Below are positions 53,593 to 55,793 of a DNA stretch of 64,000 nucleotides, one piece after another (position 1 is the first letter of the stretch; each line of letters starts with the position of its first letter). The notes beneath the pieces are model-generated. The model saw only the letters and a program-made list of their open reading frames with translations. It was not told the origin of the DNA and ran no database searches. The position numbers and the translations under genes are program-made. The DNA comes from Phaeosaccion multiseriatum (taxonomy: Eukaryota > Protista > Ochrophyta, other classes). The DNA lies in the NCBI GenBank assembly GCA_965112735.1, contig OZ218957.1:1302001-1366000 (forward strand), given 5' to 3'.

Positions 53593-55793
53593 ATGGTGAG
53601 TGGGGAGGACGGATTGTGTGTGCTCAGCGTGCTCTTTATTGGCCTGGTGATATCCTTGCTTTCCTGGTCGCGAAAGACTTGACGCAGGGAGGGAGGGAGG
53701 GCAGGGGAGAGGAGAGATCGAAGACTGACACCTCTGTGCATTTGTGCTCATCGCTGTGAACTCTCGCTGCCCCCGTGCTCAGGGTCGTGGTCCTAAGAAG
53801 CACTTGAAGCGGCTCAATGCCCCCAAGCATTGGATGCTTGCCAAGATGGACGGCGTGTGGGCCCCCAAGCCCTCTCCCGGCCCCCACAGCCAGAGGGAGT
53901 GCTTGCCGCTCATCCTCATCTTGCGCAACCAGCTCAAGTACGCCCTCACCAAGAGGTGAGTTACTCAAGCTGGACCACCTGCAGGGCTCGCACAGTATAT
54001 AGTGGGCCTGGAAGGACGCCACCCTCTCCTCCCCTCCCTTCCTGCTCACCGTGTACTCACCACTCTCACTCTCCCCTCCTCTGCGCAACCCAAACCAGAG
54101 AGGCGAACATGATCTGCATGCAGAAGCTTGTGACTGTTGATGGCAAGGTCCGAACCGACCTCAACTTCCCCGCTGGCTTCATGGGTAAGTTTGACGGAGC
54201 GCTACGGAGGAGGACTGCATATTTGGGGAAGGGGGTGAACGAAGCAGCAGGGGAAGAACGGGATGACGGGGTACGGCGAGGAAAGAGGAAAGAATGAAAG
54301 GGCGAGGGCGCTGTGCACGGTTCCGCCGTCATCCTCTTGGTATCTCGAGCAGCGGAGAGGAAATCGGAGCATAGACAAGAAGATACACCCGTCTGCCACG
54401 CCCTACGATTCCCCCCTGCCGTTCCCTTGGGAGCGGAGGGGGTCCGAGTCAGTTCCGAAAGGGCGAGAAGAGAGTGTGGTGAGCGCATGCAGATCTGGAC
54501 ATTGTGCGGCCCCATTTCTGGGGCCGCATACCCTCTCGTCAATGTCGGCAGTCAGGGCCAAACTCCCGGCGCTTGTGTGGCAGGGGTGTTTCCTCTGGGA
54601 GACCCCTGCTCCACTCTCGCCGGTTTTGTTTTGGCCCGTGAAATGACTCGCCGTATTGTAGTGTACGAGGGCCGTCTGCTCGTGAAACCCACCTCCCCCA
54701 CGTCATCTGCCTCTCGGTCCGCCTGCGCTCTTTCGAGTGTCAAGCGGTGCCAATAAGAAGAGAGGTGCACGGTCTTGTGGGCGGCACGCGGAGAAGGGGC
54801 TTTCATGCCCTCGTCCGGACAGCGCGGGAGGGAGACTGATGAAAAGGGTGGCAGGAGGAGGTGCACTGGCAGCTCTTGAACTGTCTAGCGCCCTCTCTCG
54901 TCGCCTGGTTCCGTCGCTCTCTCTCCTGGACGCTTAGTCTGTGAATTAACGTCATACGACGCCCCAGACTCCCCTCGGGGGCAGGGAAGGGCAAACACAC
55001 GCGGGGAGGGGGGTGCATGAGAGCTCAGCCTCTCGGCCCTGGCCCTGTGCGTGCGTGCCCATCTCTGTATCTGGATGGTTGGTGACAAGTCCAAGAGCTT
55101 TTTCCTCTGCTGCTTCGGAGCCCCCAGCCCTCTCTCTCCACCCGACATCACTCTCGACGCCTGAGTTTCGTCAGAGGAGTATGAACAAGGACAGCAGCGT
55201 TGTGGTTGGGCTGGGCATAGTCAACCCCCACCCCTCCCCCCTTCCGCGTCTAATGGTGCTCACCCTGTGCCTTGTCTGCGTAACCCCCCCCTACTAACAT
55301 GAACCCTTTGTTCACAGACGTTGTCCACCTGCCCAAGTCCGGCGACCACTTCCGTCTCCTGTACAGCGTCAAGGGCCGCTTCACCATGAGCCGCGTCGAC
55401 GTACGTACATCACCCACCTGGCTCCTGTGTCCCCTCCCCTCTCGCGTATAGGCTGACGGTCTTTTGTTCATCCCGACTTGTGTCCTCTCCCCTCTCCGCC
55501 GGTCCTGCAGGAAGTTGAGGCGAACATCAAGCTGTGCCGCGTGATGAAGGTCGATGTGTCCAAGAAGAGCATCCCTTACCTCGTCACCCACGACGGACGC
55601 ACCATCCGCTACCCGGACCCCGTCATCAAGGTGTGTGTGTATGTGCATGTGTGAGTGTGCATGTGTGTGTGTGTGTGCGCGCTTGTGCTGGAGAGAGCTA
55701 CCCACAGCGAAAGCAAAGGCGTCGTCTCTCTAGCCCATCTGTCTTGTCCTTGTCTTTCTCTCTCCCCTTACATTCCTTTCCCCTCTCTTGCCG

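Follow-up and report, generated by a model that had tools for sequence, protein, structure and literature searches.

Stable predicted hairpins in the long third intron of the ribosomal protein eS4 gene of the alga Phaeosaccion multiseriatum

The gene for ribosomal protein eS4 (RPS4) of the ochrophyte alga Phaeosaccion multiseriatum has one long intron, the third, of 1133 nucleotides (nt), and five others of only ~110-207 nt, which raises the question of whether the long intron carries an RNA structure with a role of its own. The gene occupies 53594-56310 on the plus strand of the window, by which we mean the whole 64,000-nt stretch of contig OZ218957.1 that was analysed. The original prediction had seen in intron 3 (54185-55317) a large multi-branched fold closed by long-range helices, and had read it as a selected structure, either a regulatory RNA or a hosted noncoding RNA. 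Here we report that, as judged by folding calculations, intron 3 does hold a real, unusually stable RNA-foldable region, the function of which is unproven, and that its excess stability is alike on both DNA strands.

The core of the proposed structure (54300-54900, 601 nt) had a minimum free energy (MFE) of -292.3 kcal/mol, as compared to a mean of about -250 kcal/mol for its dinucleotide shuffles (z -6.8 with 20 shuffles and -5.3 with 60 shuffles). Composition-preserving block shuffles still left z values of -6.3 (20-nt blocks) and -5.7 (40-nt blocks); thus, the purine and pyrimidine blocks of this sequence do not account for the stability of the core. When 127 segments of equal length across the 64 kb were ranked, the core came first, with an excess of -42 kcal/mol (empirical z -4.3), as against -24 kcal/mol for the runner-up among the 124 other segments. 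The proposed fold thus proved better than chance, both by the 60 shuffles and by this ranking. The MFE of the entire intron was -508.1 kcal/mol, with a z value of -5.0. These data bear on the possibility that a GC-rich sequence with purine- and pyrimidine-rich blocks simply folds well anyway. Several arms (54816-54941) do join GA-rich to CU-rich tracts, the core had been delimited only once the sequence had been inspected, and base composition predicts about 3 perfect 9-nt complements in 1133 nt by chance. However, an unbiased 150-nt scan of the gene gave a single strong peak at 54500-54649 (plus-strand z -8.1, minus-strand z -6.3), and with the block shuffles and the lead of the core over all other segments this makes an artefact of chance or composition, already disfavoured, very improbable.

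Most of the excess stability was traced to two neighbouring hairpins. The twin-hairpin core at 54496-54672 of the plus strand (177 nt) folded at -98.0 kcal/mol, compared to -64.5 kcal/mol for shuffles (z -8.2), and held 33.5 of the 42 kcal/mol of core excess, i.e. about 80%. Pair probabilities, here and below, come from a pre-mRNA ensemble consisting of exon 3, intron 3 and exon 4. Hairpin A (54503-54530) has a perfect 10-bp stem (54505-54514/54519-54528) with a UUUC loop at 54515-54518 and a pair probability of 0.97; in the full fold its stem extends to 12 bp, none of them G-U. The original prediction had set this hairpin on a GACATTG/CAATGTC stem; the perfect hairpin is present, but the probability of that stem in the pre-mRNA was 0.00. 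Hairpin B (54546-54655), an imperfect palindrome of 110 nt, corresponds to the ~100-nt stacked arm that had been proposed. For the plus strand its folding energy was -62.4 kcal/mol with z -6.5, and for the minus strand -61.6 kcal/mol with z -7.6. Its 40 pairs (27 GC, 10 AU and 3 GU) have probabilities of 0.83-1.00, two of the three G-U pairs lie in a doubtful apical stem, and the hairpin is bulged yet retains unbroken Watson-Crick helices of 9, 8, 6, 5 and 4 bp. Perfect short-loop palindromes of at least 10 bp are over-represented about threefold in the whole window, with 4 found as against 1.1 expected from shuffles, and 3 of those found are not microsatellites, as against ~1.1 of any kind in shuffles. 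Hairpin A is therefore unremarkable by itself.

Is this stability a property of the RNA, or of the DNA? The core exceeded its shuffles equally on either strand (plus-strand z -5.3, minus-strand z -5.4). Strand-symmetric, nearly all Watson-Crick pairing of this kind is characteristic of inverted repeats in DNA; it offers no sign that the sense RNA is under selection, and inverted-repeat DNA is just as probable an origin as selection at the RNA level. The claim of a selected RNA fold thus stands in so far as the stable foldable region is real, but the symmetry, together with the 37 Watson-Crick and only 3 G-U pairs of hairpin B, lends nothing to its being selected. A strand test on the G-U pairs of hairpin B (3 versus 0) was set aside, as the pairs were too few for a decision. 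The case carries a more general caution, namely that a very strong folding z-score can stem from two palindromic hairpins that are equally stable on both DNA strands.

The smaller arms of the structure fared unevenly. Those proposed at 54399-54465 and 54710-54765 were recovered, with z values of -3.1 (54395-54470) and -3.2 (54705-54770); the second of them, at 54709-54766 of the plus strand, has a UUUC loop at 54731-54734 and pair probabilities of 0.95-1.00. A further local arm at 54816-54941 on the plus strand, formed between one GA-rich and one CU-rich tract, had an RNALfold z of -4.8, and its helix 54825-35/54918-28 had a probability of 0.98. The hairpin at 54780-54830 was no better than shuffles (z -0.8). 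The original prediction had further noted that three hairpins share a UUUC loop. UUUC indeed occurs in loops at 54515, 54731 and 54801, which amounts to 3 of the 16 hairpin loops predicted in the intron (raw hypergeometric p 7e-4), and also at 54589, in the open apex of hairpin B, but the enrichment was lost upon correction for 256 tetramers. The UUUC-loop motif of intron 3 is therefore suggestive only.

RNALfold z-score scanning of both strands of the 64 kb placed hairpin B among the top three matches on the plus strand and the top two on the minus strand. The best plus-strand match in the window was a 55-nt hairpin at 60618-60672 (-31.5 kcal/mol, z -6.2), which contains several G-U pairs. 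The sole minus-strand match above hairpin B, at 3002-3105 with z -11, was rejected as a hairpin: it consists of adjacent (TCAG)n and (TCAC)n microsatellites, which pair mutually. This neighbouring pair of microsatellites is a trap for z-score scans of this genome.

We then come to the helices that were said to close the structure. About 600 nt were proposed to be enclosed by GAGGGCGCT/AGCGCCCTC (54304/54887) and by a pair of GTGCAC copies. GAGGGCGCT and AGCGCCCTC do form a perfect 9-nt complement, GTGCAC occurs at 54313, 54765 and 54861, and the 5' closing segment, GAGGGCGCT plus GTGCAC (54304-54318, plus strand), is complementary to 54861-54895; in isolation, the two closing duplexes amount to -24.1 and -18.7 kcal/mol. 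However, these helices form solely in the fold of the isolated 601-nt excerpt, have a probability of 0.00 in the whole intron or the pre-mRNA, and are unused in the full fold. Long-range closing helices that are read from an excerpt can thus disappear once the whole intron is folded. The predicted ensemble is instead closed by a helix between 54240-54258 and 55099-55117 on the plus strand, in which 17 of the 19 positions are complementary, with -31.5 kcal/mol, a pair probability of 0.98 and an interior of 840 nt; 6 of 200 shuffles equalled it. Outside this lies a 9-bp helix (54227-54235/55237-55245, plus strand; -17.8 kcal/mol, probability 0.46), the 3' arm of which lies 52 nt upstream of the predicted branch A. 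Inside, 54261-54708 on the plus strand forms an inner domain, closed by 54261-54268/54701-54708 (probability 0.97), which encloses a hairpin at 54412-54442 (probability 0.97-1.00) as well as the twin hairpin. In the folding model, therefore, intron 3 is multi-branched and closed over a long range, as had been proposed, but through other helices; the alternative helices are real competitors, in that the pairs proposed originally exclude the predicted full fold. The effective distance that separates the 5' splice site from the branch point was 19 steps, and 22 of 40 shuffles were as short or shorter. Since shuffles are equally compact, compaction is generic to long RNAs in MFE models, and this distance is uninformative.

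Intron 3 lies in phase 1 between the codons for ...PAGFM and D(VVHLPK...). Many eS4 gene fragments of diverse eukaryotes end at this very point, and the position of the intron is, on the evidence of these sequences, ancient. An AT-rich Logan contig (L001) has at this position an intron of 379 nt (4119-4497), the sole intron of its gene, and Phaeothamnion confervicola (L083) has one of 435 nt (3505-3939). Neither was better than its shuffles, with z -0.5 and -0.7 on the two strands of the former and z -0.3 for the latter. As these two same-position introns are unstructured, structure is at least not deeply rooted at this place in the gene, and the result lends no support to a regulatory intron fold as originally proposed. 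Identity to the eS4 of this alga does not exceed 71% for the proteins of L001 and Phaeothamnion. Five protist contigs (L038, L042, L043, L081 and L082) have introns of ~31-36 nt at the same position, and Chrysophaeum and Triparma have eS4 genes with no intron there. The protist-type gene of L043, with introns of ~35 nt, comes from a gut metagenome. A metagenome scan gave 80 eS4 loci, nearly all of them intronless at this site or distant, and a full-length metatranscriptome relative, when used as query, brought up only proteins with at most 71% identity to the eS4 of this alga. The best of the exon-2 fragments (P0003) is 87% identical and has a long intron space. Metatranscriptome runs X7-X10 contain a strain or species whose eS4 exons are ~98% identical to those of this alga.

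How the intron behaves in RNA could be followed from assembled contigs, each of which carries one figure for k-mer depth. All exon junctions of the seven-exon gene were fixed by spliced contigs from three public runs. One of these, X5, comes from another sample of the same organism; it is labelled "DNA?", but is clearly spliced RNA and carries the exact joint between exons 3 and 4. GT..AG-spliced contigs in X5, X6 and X11, all of which had been guessed to be DNA, show these runs to be transcriptomes. A 1192-nt contig of X5 (54155-55346) spans the whole of intron 3 with ~30 nt of each flanking exon, and differs from the window by one G>C at 54857. Its k-mer depth was ~1/100 of that of exon and spliced-joint contigs, a rough figure from contigs only. 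From the spliced joint and the low-depth intron contig it follows that an unspliced form exists and that splicing is efficient; by far the most steady-state transcripts have lost intron 3 at its exact boundaries. Within intron 3, the RNA contigs had neither alternative nor poison joints, and none of the other eS4 introns was covered by them. As the assembler may drop short introns of low coverage, we claim no special retention of intron 3, and a comparison of depth between introns, which would rest on contigs from such an assembler, was not used as evidence. Low-depth contigs identical to the eS4 mRNA of this alga were also present in X6 and X11, which are from other organisms of the same study and suggest carry-over between samples.

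The exon pieces of the gene match the RS4NT, KOW and 40S_S4_C domains and are 82-87% identical to eS4 fragments of other eukaryotes. Exon 3 (54099-54184, plus strand) is defined by the joints 53955/54099 and 54184/55318 and its translation matches the eS4 of relatives, while exon 4 (55318-55400, plus strand) is defined by RNA-contig joints and by tblastn against relatives. The boundaries of intron 3, a GT..AG intron, and its contrast in length with the other introns had thus been drawn correctly. Its 5' splice site, GTAAGT (54185-54190, plus strand), was placed from the sequence and the joint, and has a mean unpaired probability of 0.36. TACTAAC at 55292-55298 of the plus strand, 20 nt before the 3' AG (55316-55317), is the putative branch site, assigned from the consensus and not mapped, with a mean unpaired probability of 0.89. 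The intron was said to contain no microsatellite, and the only tandem repeat that Tandem Repeats Finder (TRF) reported in it was a 16-nt (GAGGAAA)x2.3. Intron 5, by the same program, consists largely of (GT)n and (TGC)n microsatellites (55631-55677 and 55794-55824), both of which were passed over as repeats in the comparison with RNA contigs. Upstream of the gene, a telo-box-like AAACCCTAA lies at 53505-53513, ~80 nt 5' of the eS4 start codon, inside a ~240-nt divergent promoter that eS4 shares with DIM1 (PF02966) on the minus strand, the ATG of which is at 53350. In plants, the telo-box motif is typical of the promoters of ribosomal-protein genes.

Could the intron host an independent RNA? 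Ribosomal-protein introns are common hosts of small RNAs, and hairpin B, with a long, mostly Watson-Crick stem, small bulges and 40 pairs in 110 nt, has the shape of a plant or algal type precursor and falls within the size range of microRNA (miRNA) precursors (~70-150 nt, mostly paired). New miRNA hairpins can, moreover, arise through template switching (PMC10710096). The intron might thus yield miRNA-like or small interfering RNA-like products cut from hairpin B, or a stable RNA resembling a small nucleolar RNA (snoRNA). Against this, Rfam gave no relevant family in intron 3 even at E up to 10 in an E-value scan of the gene, and nothing at gathering score across the whole window. The few weak matches within the intron were to models of miRNAs and fell well short of the gathering scores of these, and no snoRNA family was among them at E up to 10. 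The original statement that the fold matches no recognised family, for which an Infernal search of Rfam had been proposed, was in this respect accurate. On inspection of the sequence, the intron has a lone UGAUGA at 54839, with the next CUGA 323 nt off and no flanking or terminal stem, and no ACA follows hairpins A and B or the adjacent arms; a transfer RNA (tRNA) scan gave no tRNAs. The RNA contigs show the whole unspliced intron only, with no separate transcript. A small-RNA precursor in intron 3 seems to us quite improbable, and the hosted noncoding RNA of the original prediction finds no backing in boxes, families or transcripts. A nested gene or transposon open reading frame was also rejected: a 147-amino-acid frame of the intron had no homologue among 5.8 billion proteins, and six frames of the intron had no Pfam domain.

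A role for the fold in splicing has more in its favour. The helix 54240-58/55099-117, with or without 54227-35/55237-45, might zip the ends of the long intron together. It is predicted at high probability and was matched by few shuffles, the putative branch site is largely unpaired, and the intron of this highly expressed gene is spliced precisely, with ~100-fold greater depth at the joint than for the unspliced form. There is also precedent in yeast (PMC2536676, PMC12350175, PMC12311795), where zipper stems act in the introns of RPS17B, RPL7A and RPL28 (PMC2536676, PMC12350175). A zipper stem is defined as one of at least 6 bp that connects the stretch after the 5' splice site with the one before the branch point, with a total linker of 42-85 nt (PMC12350175). 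The strong helix, with 17 of 19 predicted pairs, exceeds that length with high confidence, but its linkers of 55 and 180 nt add up to 235 nt, and those of the 9-bp helix (42 and 52 nt) to 94 nt, so that both are beyond the limit, the 9-bp helix by a small margin. Compaction is, besides, generic to long RNAs in MFE models, and most of the excess energy lies in the mid-intron hairpins and not in the closing helix. A selected splicing aid is on balance unlikely. The same structure could conceivably act as a feedback sensor, whereby excess eS4, or a factor recognising UUUC-type loops, binds the intron, slows its removal and lowers the output of eS4. Precedents exist (PMC12311795, PMC13232506). The gene has no other long intron, and intron 3 occupies an ancient, widely retained position; an unspliced contig was found for it; the originally proposed pairs, at -18.7 and -24.1 kcal/mol alone, would compete with the predicted fold as mutually exclusive helices; and UUUC recurs in its loops. 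On the other hand, the pairing has no sense-strand bias, two other stramenopiles have unstructured introns at this position, the RNA contigs have no alternative or poison joints, and the missing unspliced forms of other introns may reflect bubble removal by the assembler. A literature search brought up no autoregulation by eS4, and to our knowledge none has been described. By analogy with yeast, such a sensor is conceivable but doubtful. A comparably low probability attaches to the twin hairpin 54496-54672 being a lineage-specific cis-regulatory RNA, whether as a splicing sensor for eS4 or another factor or as a small-RNA precursor. We infer that the fold of intron 3 is not an independent hosted RNA, and that there is no evidence of an eS4-responsive switch.

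The explanation that we tentatively prefer, with somewhat less than even confidence, is that intron 3 is an expanded ancient intron containing transcribed imperfect palindromes, the fold of which is compact and harmless, perhaps mildly helpful. Hairpin A and the 110-nt, 40-pair hairpin B would sit in a moderately self-complementary sequence of 1.1 kb. They would most likely have come from an event at the DNA level, either an inverted duplication by template switching or a foldback element that has since decayed, and such an origin would also account for the length of the intron, 2.6-3 times that in two other stramenopiles. Once transcribed, the intron would collapse into a compact, multi-branched fold closed by 54240-58/55099-117, leaving the predicted branch site single-stranded, and its role as RNA would at most be passive compaction of a long intron, as in the structured ribosomal-protein introns of yeast. 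Several observations weigh against this explanation. In the 64-kb window, blastn found no second copy of any part of intron 3; the surroundings of the hairpins show neither a target-site duplication nor clean terminal repeats, and the flanks of hairpin B have no direct duplication. With neither a second copy in the window nor a target-site duplication, a transposon origin is unproven. The remainder of the core still surpasses shuffles at z -3.4, the closing helix, equalled by 6 of 200 shuffles, is somewhat unlikely to arise by chance, and UUUC occupies 3 of 16 loops at the raw p of 7e-4. That hairpin B has kept its Watson-Crick helices despite the bulges could reflect maintenance by selection, and the unspliced contig exists for intron 3 only, possibly as an effect of the assembler.

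Template switching during replication is documented to create perfect hairpins (PMC8794818, PMC10710096). Intron 3 resembles these in its perfect 10-bp inverted repeat with a 4-nt spacer, in the long, almost purely Watson-Crick hairpin B, and in stability that is equal on both strands, but hairpin B has several bulges and is thus not the product of a fresh, single template-switch event. As an imperfect palindrome of ~110 nt within an intron, hairpin B is also like foldback elements or those of the miniature inverted-repeat transposable element (MITE) type, and differs from them in the missing target-site duplication, clean terminal repeats and second copy in the 64-kb window. With intron-hosted snoRNAs and intronic miRNA precursors it shares the location in a ribosomal-protein intron and stable hairpins of suitable size, and differs in having neither a C/D or H/ACA arrangement nor an Rfam match.

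Among RNA-level systems, autoregulatory introns are described for yeast RPL30, RPS14B, RPL22B, RPS9A/B, RPL7B, RPL18B and RPS22B (PMC12311795, PMC13232506). Like these, intron 3 is a structured ribosomal-protein intron that could form mutually exclusive helices and has a detectable unspliced form; in contrast, its structure, known here from prediction, is distant from the splice signals, and eS4 is not among the proteins known for such control. Feedback at the level of splicing and structural splicing aids have, for the introns of ribosomal-protein genes, hardly been documented outside yeast and a few animals. If the structure of this algal eS4 intron is selected, it would carry the idea into a remote lineage and to a protein for which such regulation is not known. 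From the zipper introns of yeast (RPS17B, RPL7A and RPL28) the eS4 intron differs in being ~2.5 times longer and from an unrelated lineage, an ochrophyte alga, in the linker of its strong helix (235 nt against a maximum of 85 nt), and in a predicted excess stability that is mostly mid-intron. It is nevertheless like them in being a long intron of a highly expressed ribosomal-protein gene, with a long-range helix between a segment soon after the 5' splice site and one upstream of the branch point, with multi-way junctions and long internal stems, and with a branch site that is, here by prediction, accessible.

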